From NCBI GenBank assembly GCA_033442325.1, contig JAWQFM010000001.1, positions 39,225 through 103,224 on the forward strand: 64,000 nucleotides of DNA. The letters run 5' to 3'. The DNA is from Salpingoeca rosetta (Eukaryota; Protista; Choanoflagellata). Of this stretch, positions 57,678 to 63,944 are shown piece after piece (the first letter of the stretch is position 1; each line of letters starts with the position of its first letter). A program made the translations under genes and the position numbers. The notes below the pieces were generated by a model. That model was not told the DNA's origin and did not search any database. It was given only the letters and a program-made list of their open reading frames with translations.

Positions 57678-60600
57678 CTACCAGTAAATCTGGGTGGTGC
57701 CTGACAAGGTCTTGATGGCGTTGTTTGCGCGCATGTCTGTTTCATGAAAGAGGCGGCCTGCGAGCGTGGGCGCCACAAGCCCAATGCGGATGACAAAGTC
57801 CCCAAACCGCTCTGTCGGCGACAAGCGGTCGCGCGCATACCGCGTAATCAGGTCCTCCAGAATCGCCAGAATCTCCACCTCGCCAATGCTCTCCTTGTAG
57901 ATCTTGGCCAGCCTGTTGCCAGCAAACCCGCCACCGAGGTAGAGGTTGTACGTCCCCGGCGCCTTGCCCACCAGCGCAATCTCCGCAACGTAGGGGCGAG
58001 AGCAGCCGTTGGGGCACCCGCTCATGCGAATCACAATTGCCTCCGACGTCAGGCCCGCCCGCGCCAGGATGCGCTCCACCTTGTCCAGCAGCGCCGGCAG
58101 ATACCGCTCGCTCTCCGCCATCGCCAGCCCGCACGTCGGCAGCGCAACGCACGCCATGGAGTTGAGCCTGAGCCCGCTGTACTGGCCGTTGTCAATGCCG
58201 TACCTGCGCAACAGCGCCTGCACGCGCGGCTTGTCCTCCGTGCTCACCGCGCCAATGATCAGGTTCTGGTTCGCCGTGAGCCGGAAGTCGCCTGCGTGCG
58301 TCTTCGCCAGCTCCCGCAGCGCAGTCTTCAGCTGGTACGTCTCCGTGTCGCGGATCCGCCCGTTCTCAATGTACATGCCGTAGTGGTGGCGCCCATCCAC
58401 GCCCTCGCTCCACCCGTAGCGGTCCGAGTTGCTCTCAAAGTGGAACGGCCGCGCAGGCTGCAGCTTGAACCCGGTCATGGCCTCCACCTGCTCCCGGTAC
58501 CACACCAGCCCGTGGTCCTCCAGCGTGTACTTGAGGCGCGCGTGCTTCCTGTTCACCCGGTCGCCGTGGTCGCGTTGGATCAGCATCACCTTCTCCCCGA
58601 CCTCCAGCGCTTGCTCGGGCGTGACAAAGCCAAGCAGGTCCGCCAGGCGCGGGTACGTGCGCGTGTTCCCGTGCGTCATGCCCATGCCGCCGCCAATGCT
58701 CACGTTCCACCCGACCAGCCGGCCCTCCTCCAGAATGGCAATGTACCCGAGACAGTGCGCAAACACGTCCACGTCATTCATGGGCGGCACCGCAATCGCC
58801 ACCTTGAACTTTCGCGGCAGGTACGACGGCCCGTACAGCGGCTCCACGTCCGTGTGCGTGTCGCCAACCACCATCTTCTTGTCCAGCCAGATCTCGTGGT
58901 AGGCCGTTGTCTTTGGTTTGAGGTGCGCAGAGAGGCGGCGCGCAAAGGACAGCACCTCCGCGTGCGCCTGCGACTGCACCGGGTTTGGGTTGGCCATCAC
59001 GTTGCGGCACACGTCCCCGCACGCCGCCAGCGTGTCCATGAGCCCGCGGTTGATGTCGCGGATCGTCGCCTTGAGATTCCACTTGAGCACGCCGTGCAGC
59101 TGAAACGCCTGCCGGGTCGTCAGCTTCAGCGTGCCGTTGGCGTGCGCGTCTGCAAGCGCGTCCATGCGCAGGTACTGCTCCGGCGTGCACACGCCACCGG
59201 GAATGCCCACACGCACCATAAACGAGTACGCGCGCTCCTTACCCGCGTCGTACAGCGCCTGCCGCACGTCGCGGTCGTCCTGCATGTAGATGCCGTGGAA
59301 CTTGGTCAGCTTGGCGTCCTCGGGAAGAATGGCCGCCGTGCTCCGGTCCGCCAGCGAGCGCTGGATGTGTCCTCGAAGGTACCCGCTCCCGCCTTTGATG
59401 TCCTCGTCCACCAGCTGCTTGCCGCCGGCCCCCGCAGCAAACGCGGCGTCCTCCCCGTCCACGGGCGGAATATCCAGCGCTGCGAACACGGCCTCCTGCC
59501 ATGGGTGCAACGCCTCCATGTACCCGTTCTCGTGCTGGTCGTCGCCAAGGCCGCACGGCGCCAGCTGCGTCGCCCCGTGCCCGCGCAGCACCGCGTCAAG
59601 GTCGCGCGCAGGCTTGCAAAAGTACTTGGCGCTGTCGGCAGTGCCTTTGCCCCAGTACTGGCTGTCGCCAAGCCCAAACACAGCAAACCGCAGGTGCCTC
59701 AGGCGCCCTTGCTTTGCCTTGCGGACAGCAGCCCACAGGTTCGTTGCGTTGCCGCACATCTCGCCCTGCCCTGCCGTGGACATGACAAAGAGCACCACGC
59801 CGCCCTCTTCCTCCTCGTCCTCAAGCTCATCCACCGTCACCGCATTTGCCTCCACGCACCGCACATCGGTCACGCCCCTGAACTCCAACCGCCTCGCCAC
59901 CTGCTCGGCCACAGCAAGGCCGTTGCCGCTGTCAGACCCATACAGCACCAGGATCTTGAGTTCGATGCGCTGCCGCGCGTTCGAGTGGACACTGGCTTGC
60001 AACCGCCGCTGCGCCGCAACCAGTCTCTCTTCCAACGACTGGGAAATGGTGTCGTTGCTGCTGCTGCTGCTGCTGCTGCTGCTGCTGCTGCTGTCGCTGT
60101 GGTTGTTGTTGCCGTTGTTGCTGTCGTCGCTGCGGGTCAGGAGACTCAACTGTGACTCCCGTGCAAGAAACGCCTCAATATCGCTGCGAAGTTTTGCTGA
60201 GTCGAGGCGGAAGGCTGCTGGCACCTGCCTTGTCGGTGCTGCAGCAGGCGTGCCTGACGACGACGACGTTGCGCTGGTTGCTGCTGCGACAACATCACTG
60301 CCGCCGTCCTTGCCGTGACGAGTGCCATCAGGGCCAGTTGACTGCTCCTGTTCCAGCGCCGGGTTGTAACGAAAGAGCGGCCACGCTCCTAAAGCAACAG
60401 CTGCTTCGCTCTCCGCTGCCATGCGGCTGCTCGCCTGCACTCCCACCTCACCAGCACCGCCCTCGCCTTGTTCTTGTCGCTGTTGCTGTTGTTGTTGTTG
60501 TTGTTGTTGTTGTTGCTGTTGCTGCTCCTGCTGGCGCTGCCGTCGCCGCGTGGGAGGAGGGGCGTAAGCGACGATGATGGCGGGCCCATCAAAGGCGTCG

Positions 60601-63600: not shown

Positions 63601-63944
63601 GTGTGTGTGTGTGTGTGTGTGTGTGTGTGTGTGTGTGTGTGTGTGTGTGTGTGTGTGTGTGTGTGTGTGTGTCAGGGGGGTATGATATTGGAGACGGATG
63701 GACGGAGGGACGTAGGGACGGAGGGACGTAGGGGCAGAGAGACGAGAGACAGAGAGACAGAGAGAGAGAGCAAGGAGCTGGCGAAGCGAAAGGACGCCAT
63801 CACTTACACACACATACACACACACTCTCTCTCTCTCTCACACTCTCTCACTCTCACATACTCTCTCACTCTCTCACTCTCTCACTCTCTCGGATGCACG
63901 TACGTGGCGTGAGCGTGGGCAGTTGCGAGATCGACGACGGGCAT
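57678..63944 (-). CDS. Assimilatory sulfite reductase beta/hemoprotein subunit (fungal Met5-like): degenerate PFOR domains + flavodoxin + siroheme/[4Fe-4S] domain
   Basis: Exon 1 at 63944-63904 (MPVVDLATAHAHAT) is phase-compatible with a single 5.85-kb exon at 63525-57678. Motifs: LYGSDSGNG, STAGQG and FGLGDSQYW (flavodoxin); KFHGIYMQDDRD, LTTRQAFQLHG, ACGDVCRNV, YLPRKFK, MACVALPTCGLA and RMSGCPNGCSRP (CysI-type hemoprotein). Confidence 0.95.

Follow-up and report, generated by a model that had tools for sequence, protein, structure and literature searches.

We analysed a window of 64,000 nucleotides from the choanoflagellate Salpingoeca rosetta (assembly GCA_033442325.1, contig JAWQFM010000001.1; the whole stretch, G000:C1:39225-103224 in our genome coordinates), the minus strand of which carries a gene for the putative beta (hemoprotein) subunit of an assimilatory sulfite reductase. 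Based on both sequence and structure comparisons, the encoded chain comprises segments resembling domains I, II, III and VI of pyruvate:ferredoxin oxidoreductase (PFOR), followed by a flavodoxin of the type binding flavin mononucleotide (FMN) and by a CysI-type siroheme/[4Fe-4S] hemoprotein (Table 1). The coding sequence is split over two exons (41 + 5848 = 5889 nt) and specifies 1962 amino acids plus a stop, in agreement with the chain of ~1960 residues described in an earlier note on this DNA, which had been made from the letters alone. Residue numbers and protein searches refer throughout to the translation of exon 2 (1947 residues), and exon 1, read by eye, encodes the very beginning of PFOR-like domain I.

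Exon 2 holds an open reading frame of 1947 codons without a stop (57678-63521, minus strand), in which ~555 residues, or ~28% of the chain, are of low complexity according to a simple entropy mask. This composition, along with the 371 of the first 1185 residues that were modelled below a predicted local distance difference test (pLDDT) score of 50, might be taken to indicate that the long frame is an artefact, with introns hidden in low-complexity runs, a decayed pseudogene, or two genes merged into one. Against this, three stranded S. rosetta RNA-seq runs, mapped to 57678-63530 with the (CA)n intron left out, covered 30 of 30 bins and displayed no joints, insertions, deletions or strand switch, and orthologs from other choanoflagellates have the same layout, the Monosiga brevicollis gene being likewise a single exon. 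Nearly all first mates fell on the plus strand, and the RNA is therefore transcribed from the minus strand. The model of exon 1, intron and exon 2 was adopted because the 25 reads (6 + 19) and one contig that leave the exon at 63525 continue into the reverse complement of the exon 1 tail. We thus consider an artefact extremely improbable: the gene is expressed and intact and its second exon is unspliced, so that the low-complexity runs (poly-T, poly-S and poly-Q) stay in the mRNA.

Table 1. Features of the sulfite reductase genes. Positions are those of the window, except for the alpha gene, which lies beyond its end.
Feature	Position	Strand	Details
Beta gene exon 1, coding part	63904-63944	-	41 nt = 13 codons + 2 nt; ATG at 63942-63944
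Beta gene intron 1	63526-63903	-	378 nt, GT..AG; GT at 63902-63903, AG at 63526-63527; contains long (CA)n microsatellite
Beta gene exon 2	57678-63525	-	single 5848-nt coding exon; stop at 57678-57680
PFOR domain I-like (pyrimidine-binding)	62922-63521	-	residues 1-200; POR_N match, 6cin/1b0p alignment, AlphaFold2 model, Foldseek
PFOR domain II-like	62202-62780	-	residues ~248-440
PFOR domain III-like	61542-62159	-	residues ~455-660; profile-supported core 547-633 (61623-61883)
PFOR domain VI-like (diphosphate-binding) + C-terminal tail	60327-61406	-	residues ~706-1065
FMN-binding flavodoxin, equivalent to the CysJ FMN half	59499-59948	-	residues 1192-1341; Pfam Flavodoxin_1, E 6.9e-24
CysI-type siroheme/[4Fe-4S] hemoprotein	57750-59411	-	residues 1371-1924; NF010029, E 1.6e-233
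Met10-like alpha gene	L003:1193-6282 = G000:C1:103992-109081	divergent from beta	starts ~770 bases past window end

Three further observations concern this gene. RNA and genome disagree at 61807 (A>G), 62207 (C>A) and 63081 (C>A), each in one run and in 4-5 reads; strain variation or error is the likeliest cause. Simple repeats, (CA)n and (GA)/(GT)-rich, occupy 63555-63690 and 63790-63900 in intron 1 and the 5' region; they are ordinary microsatellites, similar stretches of which match more than 160 places in the genome. An 803-residue open reading frame on the opposite strand (57744-60155, plus) overlaps the beta gene, has almost no RNA from its strand and owes its existence to the high G+C content (0.61-0.66).

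The C-terminal half of the chain has the composition that the earlier note had given it, a flavodoxin and then a hemoprotein, and is predicted from its sequence to be catalytically intact. The hemoprotein is matched end to end by the CysI family model (Table 1) and aligns to Escherichia coli CysI (6c3m) with 548 bits over 553 residues. The TIGR02041 model scored 755.5 bits on the exon 2 protein, against a cut-off of 756.55, and 759.9 bits, above that cut-off, in a six-frame search of the genome. Both pairs of cysteine ligands are kept (CVALPTC at 58131-58151 and GCPNGC at 58002-58019), along with the basic anion-binding site LPRKFK (58803-58820). The cysJ profile matches the beta chain at its positions 44-202 only, which correspond to the FMN part.

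For the N-terminal half, the hypothesis of a PFOR fold over ~1000 residues, which the earlier note had put forward as open to refutation, was borne out by phmmer and Foldseek. Pfam recovered a weak POR_N match in addition to Flavodoxin_1 and NIR_SIR_ferr plus NIR_SIR, and the NCBIfam model of single-chain PFOR, TIGR02176, matched the beta chain in three stretches (E 1.2e-54). When the first 1170 residues were compared to solved structures using phmmer, PFORs were the only matches and were collinear: in 6cin, residues 147-350 correspond to 127-330 (end of domain I and domain II), 586-628 to 491-533 (domain III, weak), 792-988 to 862-1074 (domain VI), and 1036-1060 to 1087-1111. An AlphaFold2 model of residues 1-1185 had a mean pLDDT of 68, with structured blocks at 80-96 and values of ~96 over residues 800-1000, and its best Foldseek matches in the PDB were the single-chain PFORs 6cin, 7plm and 1b0p (E 1e-31 to 1e-36). 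All the motifs quoted earlier were found again, including TAQEAHDMALVAH at residues 163-175, FFEYTGP at 274-280 and LAVRCLRPW at 318-326, and, for domain III, VVVADASLL at 577-585 and LAPGGRVVL at 596-604. Sequence and model together thus indicate that the first ~1065 residues adopt a PFOR fold stripped of its cofactor sites. Calling this PFOR “near-complete” nevertheless overstated the case: around residues 660-706, just upstream of domain VI, a deletion has removed domains IV and V (ferredoxin), and domain III is shortened and split by low-complexity sequence. Domain I also carries a low-complexity insert, at residues ~100-143 (63093-63224).

Domain III was not detected by pairwise phmmer between a genuine PFOR (P0001) and the S. 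rosetta protein. The core listed in Table 1 was matched, with 61 bits, once a PFOR domain III profile had been iterated through the collected homologs. Alignment A1 comprises 38 Met5-type N-termini and one real PFOR; over the stretch that corresponds to S. rosetta residues 440-670, the PFOR contributes 228 residues (its 400-627), the long homologs 176-256 and the short ones 0-13, which upholds the earlier suggestion that this chain keeps more of PFOR than a typical fungal Met5 does. Using VIA-align, the AlphaFold2 model of residues 440-670 could be superimposed on 1b0p 416-630, 7plm 416-625 and 6cin 413-626 with Z 13.8-15.2 and a root-mean-square deviation of 3.0-3.5 Å over 156-163 residues. 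The next matches were oxalate oxidoreductase chains and the stand-alone gamma subunits PORC and OorC (Z 8-12), unrelated Rossmann folds reached at most Z 5.9, and Foldseek agreed with VIA. Relative to PFOR, the domain has a low-complexity insert, a shortened helical half and no Gly-rich loop (alignment A2). Profile, alignment and predicted structure thus all point to domain III being present in the S. rosetta beta chain.

The cofactor sites of the PFOR part have been lost, and lost across the family. In S. rosetta the domain VI GDG motif (residues 893-902, 60816-60845) is degenerate, with GADAW for GGDGW, and the diphosphate/Mg loop is gone, reading PEMEDYSSP for DTEVYSNTG (PEMEDYS at 60741-60761). 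A methionine stands at what we take, from 1b0p, to be the position of the Mg-binding threonine. Across alignment A1, neither the third Gly of GDG nor the NTGGQ loop is left in any of the 38 Met5-type rows, and in 38 of 38 the 12 PFOR [4Fe-4S] cluster cysteines are all absent or substituted, the ferredoxin domain having been removed as a clean deletion. The Glu that activates thiamine pyrophosphate (TPP) is not conserved in these rows, being retained at most in a few and absent in S. rosetta. The choanoflagellate rows (n=3) have also lost the DT dipeptide, which together with the G-A-D-A of S. rosetta goes slightly beyond the family-wide loss. No CxxCxxCxxxC motif occurs in the beta chain. The degraded TPP motif and missing ferredoxin cysteine motifs reported in the earlier note are therefore confirmed, with every cluster cysteine gone, and what is left of PFOR competence is the set of I-II-III-VI folds in PFOR order, with neither the TPP/Mg site nor the three [4Fe-4S] clusters. 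With the TPP motifs, the Fe-S ligands, domains IV and V and the domain III Gly-rich loop all lost, the S. rosetta module is predicted to be unable to oxidise pyruvate. Judging from the aligned sequences, a dead PFOR is a family trait that extends to fungi and is common to all 38 aligned proteins, and no peculiarity of this gene.

To place the S. rosetta chain among its relatives, homologs were collected with the flavodoxin/CysI part as query, restricted by design to long proteins, and 2198 were found at E <=1e-10. A word-index search with the N-terminal 1170 residues was swamped by low-complexity words and yielded one true PFOR only. Named homologs include those from M. brevicollis (73% identity), ichthyosporeans, Chromosphaera (Nk52), Corallochytrium, Lithocolla and Phytophthora, and many fungal ones are labelled “sulfite reductase [NADPH] subunit beta”. 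We then took a domain census of the best 120 of the 2198 homologs plus S. rosetta, a set of 121 that includes no ascomycete rows. Domains I, II and VI were present in all complete rows, and IV or V in none. Domain III was absent from 95 of the 121, among them Dikarya, Glomeromycota, chytrids, ichthyosporeans and an oomycete. The 26 carriers comprise S. rosetta, M. brevicollis, P0002 (a cluster that includes Barroeca monosierra), Chromosphaera, ~19 environmental or transcriptome sequences, and the Mucoromycota-type fungi Bifiguratus, Calcarisporiella and P0050. The possibility raised in the earlier note that such an architecture might be standard among other protist Met5 proteins is therefore borne out in part, I-II-III-VI being shared with some lineages of the census. 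The length of the chain ahead of the flavodoxin is bimodal in the same 121 sequences (~680-790 vs ~940-1280 aa), and the few apparent short forms with domain III proved to be gene calls truncated at the 5' end. Met5-type beta subunits can hence be assigned, on their sequences, to two architectures, I-II-VI and I-II-III-VI.

A profile search over 1.84 billion representatives, the best 150 matches of which were classified, gave the same two classes, with 5 flavodoxin-CysI fusions carrying domain III and 22 without it. Among these best 150, ferredoxin-type Cys motifs were found in none of the flavodoxin-CysI fusions, and no sequence combined a ferredoxin domain with CysI as a full PFOR-flavodoxin-CysI intermediate would. 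Eight of the 150 unite a full PFOR with a flavodoxin and a flavin adenine dinucleotide (FAD) domain, bear two Cys motifs of the ferredoxin type and have GDG intact, and can be read as enzymes of the pyruvate:NADP+ oxidoreductase (PNO) type. One metagenomic flavodoxin-CysI fusion, P0211 (JGI/IMG, 1797 aa, on an 11-kb contig), is clearly less degenerate than the S. rosetta chain: over domains I-III its match to a real PFOR reaches 254 bits, and it has GGDGW intact and the catalytic Glu kept, retains part of the domain III Gly-rich loop, and has no ferredoxin-type Cys motifs. Other matches to a crude GDG pattern were mostly the FMN loop of the flavodoxin (LYGSDGGNA), a true domain VI GGDGW being found in P0211 only. 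The proposal that the S. rosetta enzyme is an intermediate between PNO and the fungal enzyme thus holds insofar as an ancestral domain appears to have been retained, and fails insofar as this chain is not the least derived; by its sequence, the more PFOR-like P0211 would be the better candidate.

Compared to known systems, the S. rosetta beta chain is closest in layout to fungal Met5/Ecm17, which has the same order of PFOR-derived N-terminus, flavodoxin and CysI, is 53-56% identical over the latter two, has likewise lost the TPP motifs, activating Glu and Fe-S ligands, and works with a separate Met10-type alpha chain. A typical fungal beta chain is ~1420-1500 aa long, belongs to the short pre-flavodoxin class and reads I-II-VI, to which S. 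rosetta adds domain III and its low-complexity residues. Yeast Met5, which we take to be 1442 aa long, would presumably belong to the short class as well, ascomycetes being outside the compared rows. The nearest relatives of the S. rosetta chain are the Barroeca-like sequence P0002 and M. brevicollis P0003 (MONBRDRAFT_32277); the latter is an ortholog that shares I-II-III-VI and the loss of the DT dipeptide, and differs in being shorter (1693 aa), with fewer low-complexity runs, and in having an HLH gene rather than the alpha gene as its upstream neighbour. Single-chain PFORs (1b0p, 6cin, 7plm) have the same fold and order for domains I, II, III and VI, whereas S. rosetta lacks IV and V, the [4Fe-4S] ligands and the Gly-rich loop, has a degenerate TPP site and bears a fused flavodoxin-CysI. 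In PNO (Euglena, Cryptosporidium), a PFOR joined to an FMN-FAD-NADPH reductase, the PFOR module is directly followed by a flavodoxin, as it is here; the S. rosetta chain has CysI in place of the FAD/NADPH domain, and its PFOR part is incomplete and appears catalytically dead. With respect to bacterial CysJ/CysI, the hemoprotein corresponds to CysI end to end, the flavodoxin to the FMN half of CysJ and the product of the neighbouring gene to its FAD/NADPH half. S. rosetta differs in that the diflavin reductase is split over two chains, each with a PFOR-derived module, and in that CysI is fused to the FMN half.

This neighbour, the Met10-like alpha gene (Table 1), provides the FAD/NADPH partner that had been left to a genome check. 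Its part at L003 1193-3679 encodes a PFOR-like N-terminus with POR_N, and 4532-6181 plus 5806-6279 correspond to cysJ positions 211-597, the FMN half being absent; it is the genome's best CysJ FAD/NADPH match. The two genes stand head-to-head with their ATGs ~820 bp apart. The first open reading frame of the alpha gene ends in a (TG)n run, where an intron is probable. Across the S. rosetta genome, this CysI is the single copy, siroheme methyltransferase genes were found, and a genome search recovered no true PFOR. A head-to-head pair also occurs in the metagenomic locus L005 (alpha 1912-5523, minus strand; beta 6001-11133, plus strand); it is absent from the M. brevicollis locus (L004) and from L007, and the layout is therefore not universal. 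At another locus (P0010, ENA ERZ23498367), a 519-aa TP_methylase protein is encoded divergently upstream of a long-form beta gene. It is of the uroporphyrinogen methyltransferase type used in siroheme synthesis, which suggests that the reductase is clustered there with the synthesis of its cofactor.

The distribution of domain III was examined on two trees. In a FastTree phylogeny of the flavodoxin/CysI part, S. rosetta, P0002 and Monosiga fall inside a clade of 22 rows (starred in our tree) that has domain III throughout, and the remaining 4 of the 26 domain III rows are scattered among short forms. Across the trees, domain III occurs in three separate places, and a quick IQ-TREE analysis of the PFOR part without the domain III columns, rooted on PFOR, calls for at least 2-3 changes of its state. 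In all carriers it sits at the homologous position between II and VI. Retention with repeated loss is the simplest explanation, because the outgroup has domain III and its position is always homologous. These sequence comparisons suggest that domain III on the beta chain is probably ancestral, kept in choanoflagellates and other lineages and lost repeatedly elsewhere, including in most fungi, ichthyosporeans and oomycetes. We hold this account at moderate confidence. Domain III could instead have been re-acquired secondarily by the beta chain, for example by recombining with a PFOR or PNO gene or with the gene for the alpha subunit. The grouping of 22 of the 26 carriers in one clade of the C-terminal tree fits such an event, and with an uncertain root, a single gain followed by a few transfers is formally possible on that tree. 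A re-acquired domain, however, would have had to land exactly at the homologous position, and this one is as diverged from PFOR as the domains flanking it, is also found in Chromosphaera and nested within fungi, and has no significant similarity between the alpha and beta chains of S. rosetta (BLASTP E 0.23, hhalign E 0.009). We therefore regard re-acquisition as very unlikely and favour retention of an ancestral domain.

The alpha chains bear on the same question. In locus L005 the alpha chain has domains I-II-III ahead of its FAD/NADPH part (domain III at 27.6 bits), and in the S. rosetta alpha chain domains I and II are clear and III is weakly suggested, by the hhalign match over 89 columns. 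Alpha chains with I-II-III and beta chains with I-II-III-VI fit the duplication of a single PFOR-bearing ancestor, as reportedly put forward by Rotte et al. (2001) for PNO, Met10 and Met5. As a tentative proposal, to which we give somewhat less than even odds, this pair of layouts would represent the ancestral eukaryotic NADPH sulfite reductase: a PNO-like fusion of PFOR and diflavin reductase would have been duplicated, one copy keeping FAD/NADPH and the other keeping FMN and capturing CysI, and the dead PFOR modules of the two chains would still associate like the halves of a PFOR homodimer and so keep the parts of the split diflavin reductase in contact. If this is true, choanoflagellates, the closest relatives of animals, would document a graded decay, from P0211 through the long form to the short fungal form, as well as a sulfate-reduction pathway later lost in animals.

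Viewed jointly, the S. rosetta gene has what characterises the Met5/Ecm17 type, namely a CysI with its four Cys ligands, an upstream flavodoxin, a dead PFOR module and a Met10-type alpha partner, and we give a probability of about 0.85 to the reading that it codes for the hemoprotein (beta) subunit of an NADPH-dependent assimilatory sulfite reductase of the fungal type, with a structural PFOR relic and an ancestral domain III. By analogy with E. coli CysJ/CysI and yeast Met10/Met5, NADPH would reduce FAD on the neighbouring alpha subunit, electrons would pass from there to FMN in the beta-chain flavodoxin and on to the [4Fe-4S]-siroheme of the CysI domain, and sulfite would be reduced to sulfide. 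The PFOR module would most likely play a structural part, keeping the two subunits joined and thereby allowing the split diflavin reductase to work.

A number of points weigh against this interpretation. The trees are FastTree and quick IQ-TREE ones in which many rows have no taxon label and rooting depends on one PFOR, and the PAPS_reduct-family gene found in the S. rosetta genome could be an FAD synthase and not a PAPS reductase. Within the N-terminus, conservation across alignment A1 is highest in domain VI (around residues 890-985), where W890, G893, D900, S904-G905, H907-H908, N917, D942 and a block at ~944-957 are invariant or nearly so and the His-His pair stands where PFOR has Asp-His, and this conservation could mean a ligand or partner site beyond a mere scaffold. 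Some members may, from their motifs, also have residual TPP binding, as GD and DT persist in the diphosphate motif of most of the family and P0211 has retained more. The PFOR module might then have a ligand-binding or regulatory role, for example as a binding site for TPP or a different nucleotide, as a sensor of pyruvate or CoA, or as a docking site for another redox partner, a view that the confident model of this region (pLDDT ~96) would also favour. In S. rosetta itself, the G-A-D-A sequence, the missing NTGGQ loop and activating Glu and the presumed replacement of the Mg-binding threonine all argue the other way, as does the loss of the domain III Gly-rich loop, and with the Fe-S ligands and ferredoxin domain gone there is no electron path from a TPP site. 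Such a role is thus unlikely, and a structural relic remains the preferred interpretation.

Part of this picture has been published. Patron, Durnford and Kopriva (2008) reported ATPS (ATP sulfurylase), APSK (APS kinase), PAPR (PAPS reductase) and SiR (sulfite reductase) in M. brevicollis, a full sulfate-reduction set (PMC2275785). Their sulfite reductase tree, from a survey that included this species, marks N-terminal PFOR moieties in aplastidic eukaryotes (PMC2275785), and later phylogenies treated sulfite reductases as paralogs of PFO (PMC4989108). Precomputed Pfam labels already place PF01558 on some beta chains. Our full-text literature searches returned no domain-level account of the Met5/Met10 PFOR modules, and none that separates I-II-VI from I-II-III-VI. 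This is no new kind of enzyme, and its dead PFOR is general to the family and already published for it; the only real extra of the S. rosetta beta chain is domain III, which it has in common with other choanoflagellates and scattered lineages.

For S. rosetta, these results describe an expressed and apparently complete fungal-type sulfite reductase, which fits the published view that the unicellular lineages closest to animals had sulfate reduction and that animals lost it. For the family, the distinction between I-II-VI and I-II-III-VI is more useful than the finding on any single gene, as the two architectures offer a concrete series for how a large redox enzyme lost its cofactors and was reused, most likely as an assembly module.

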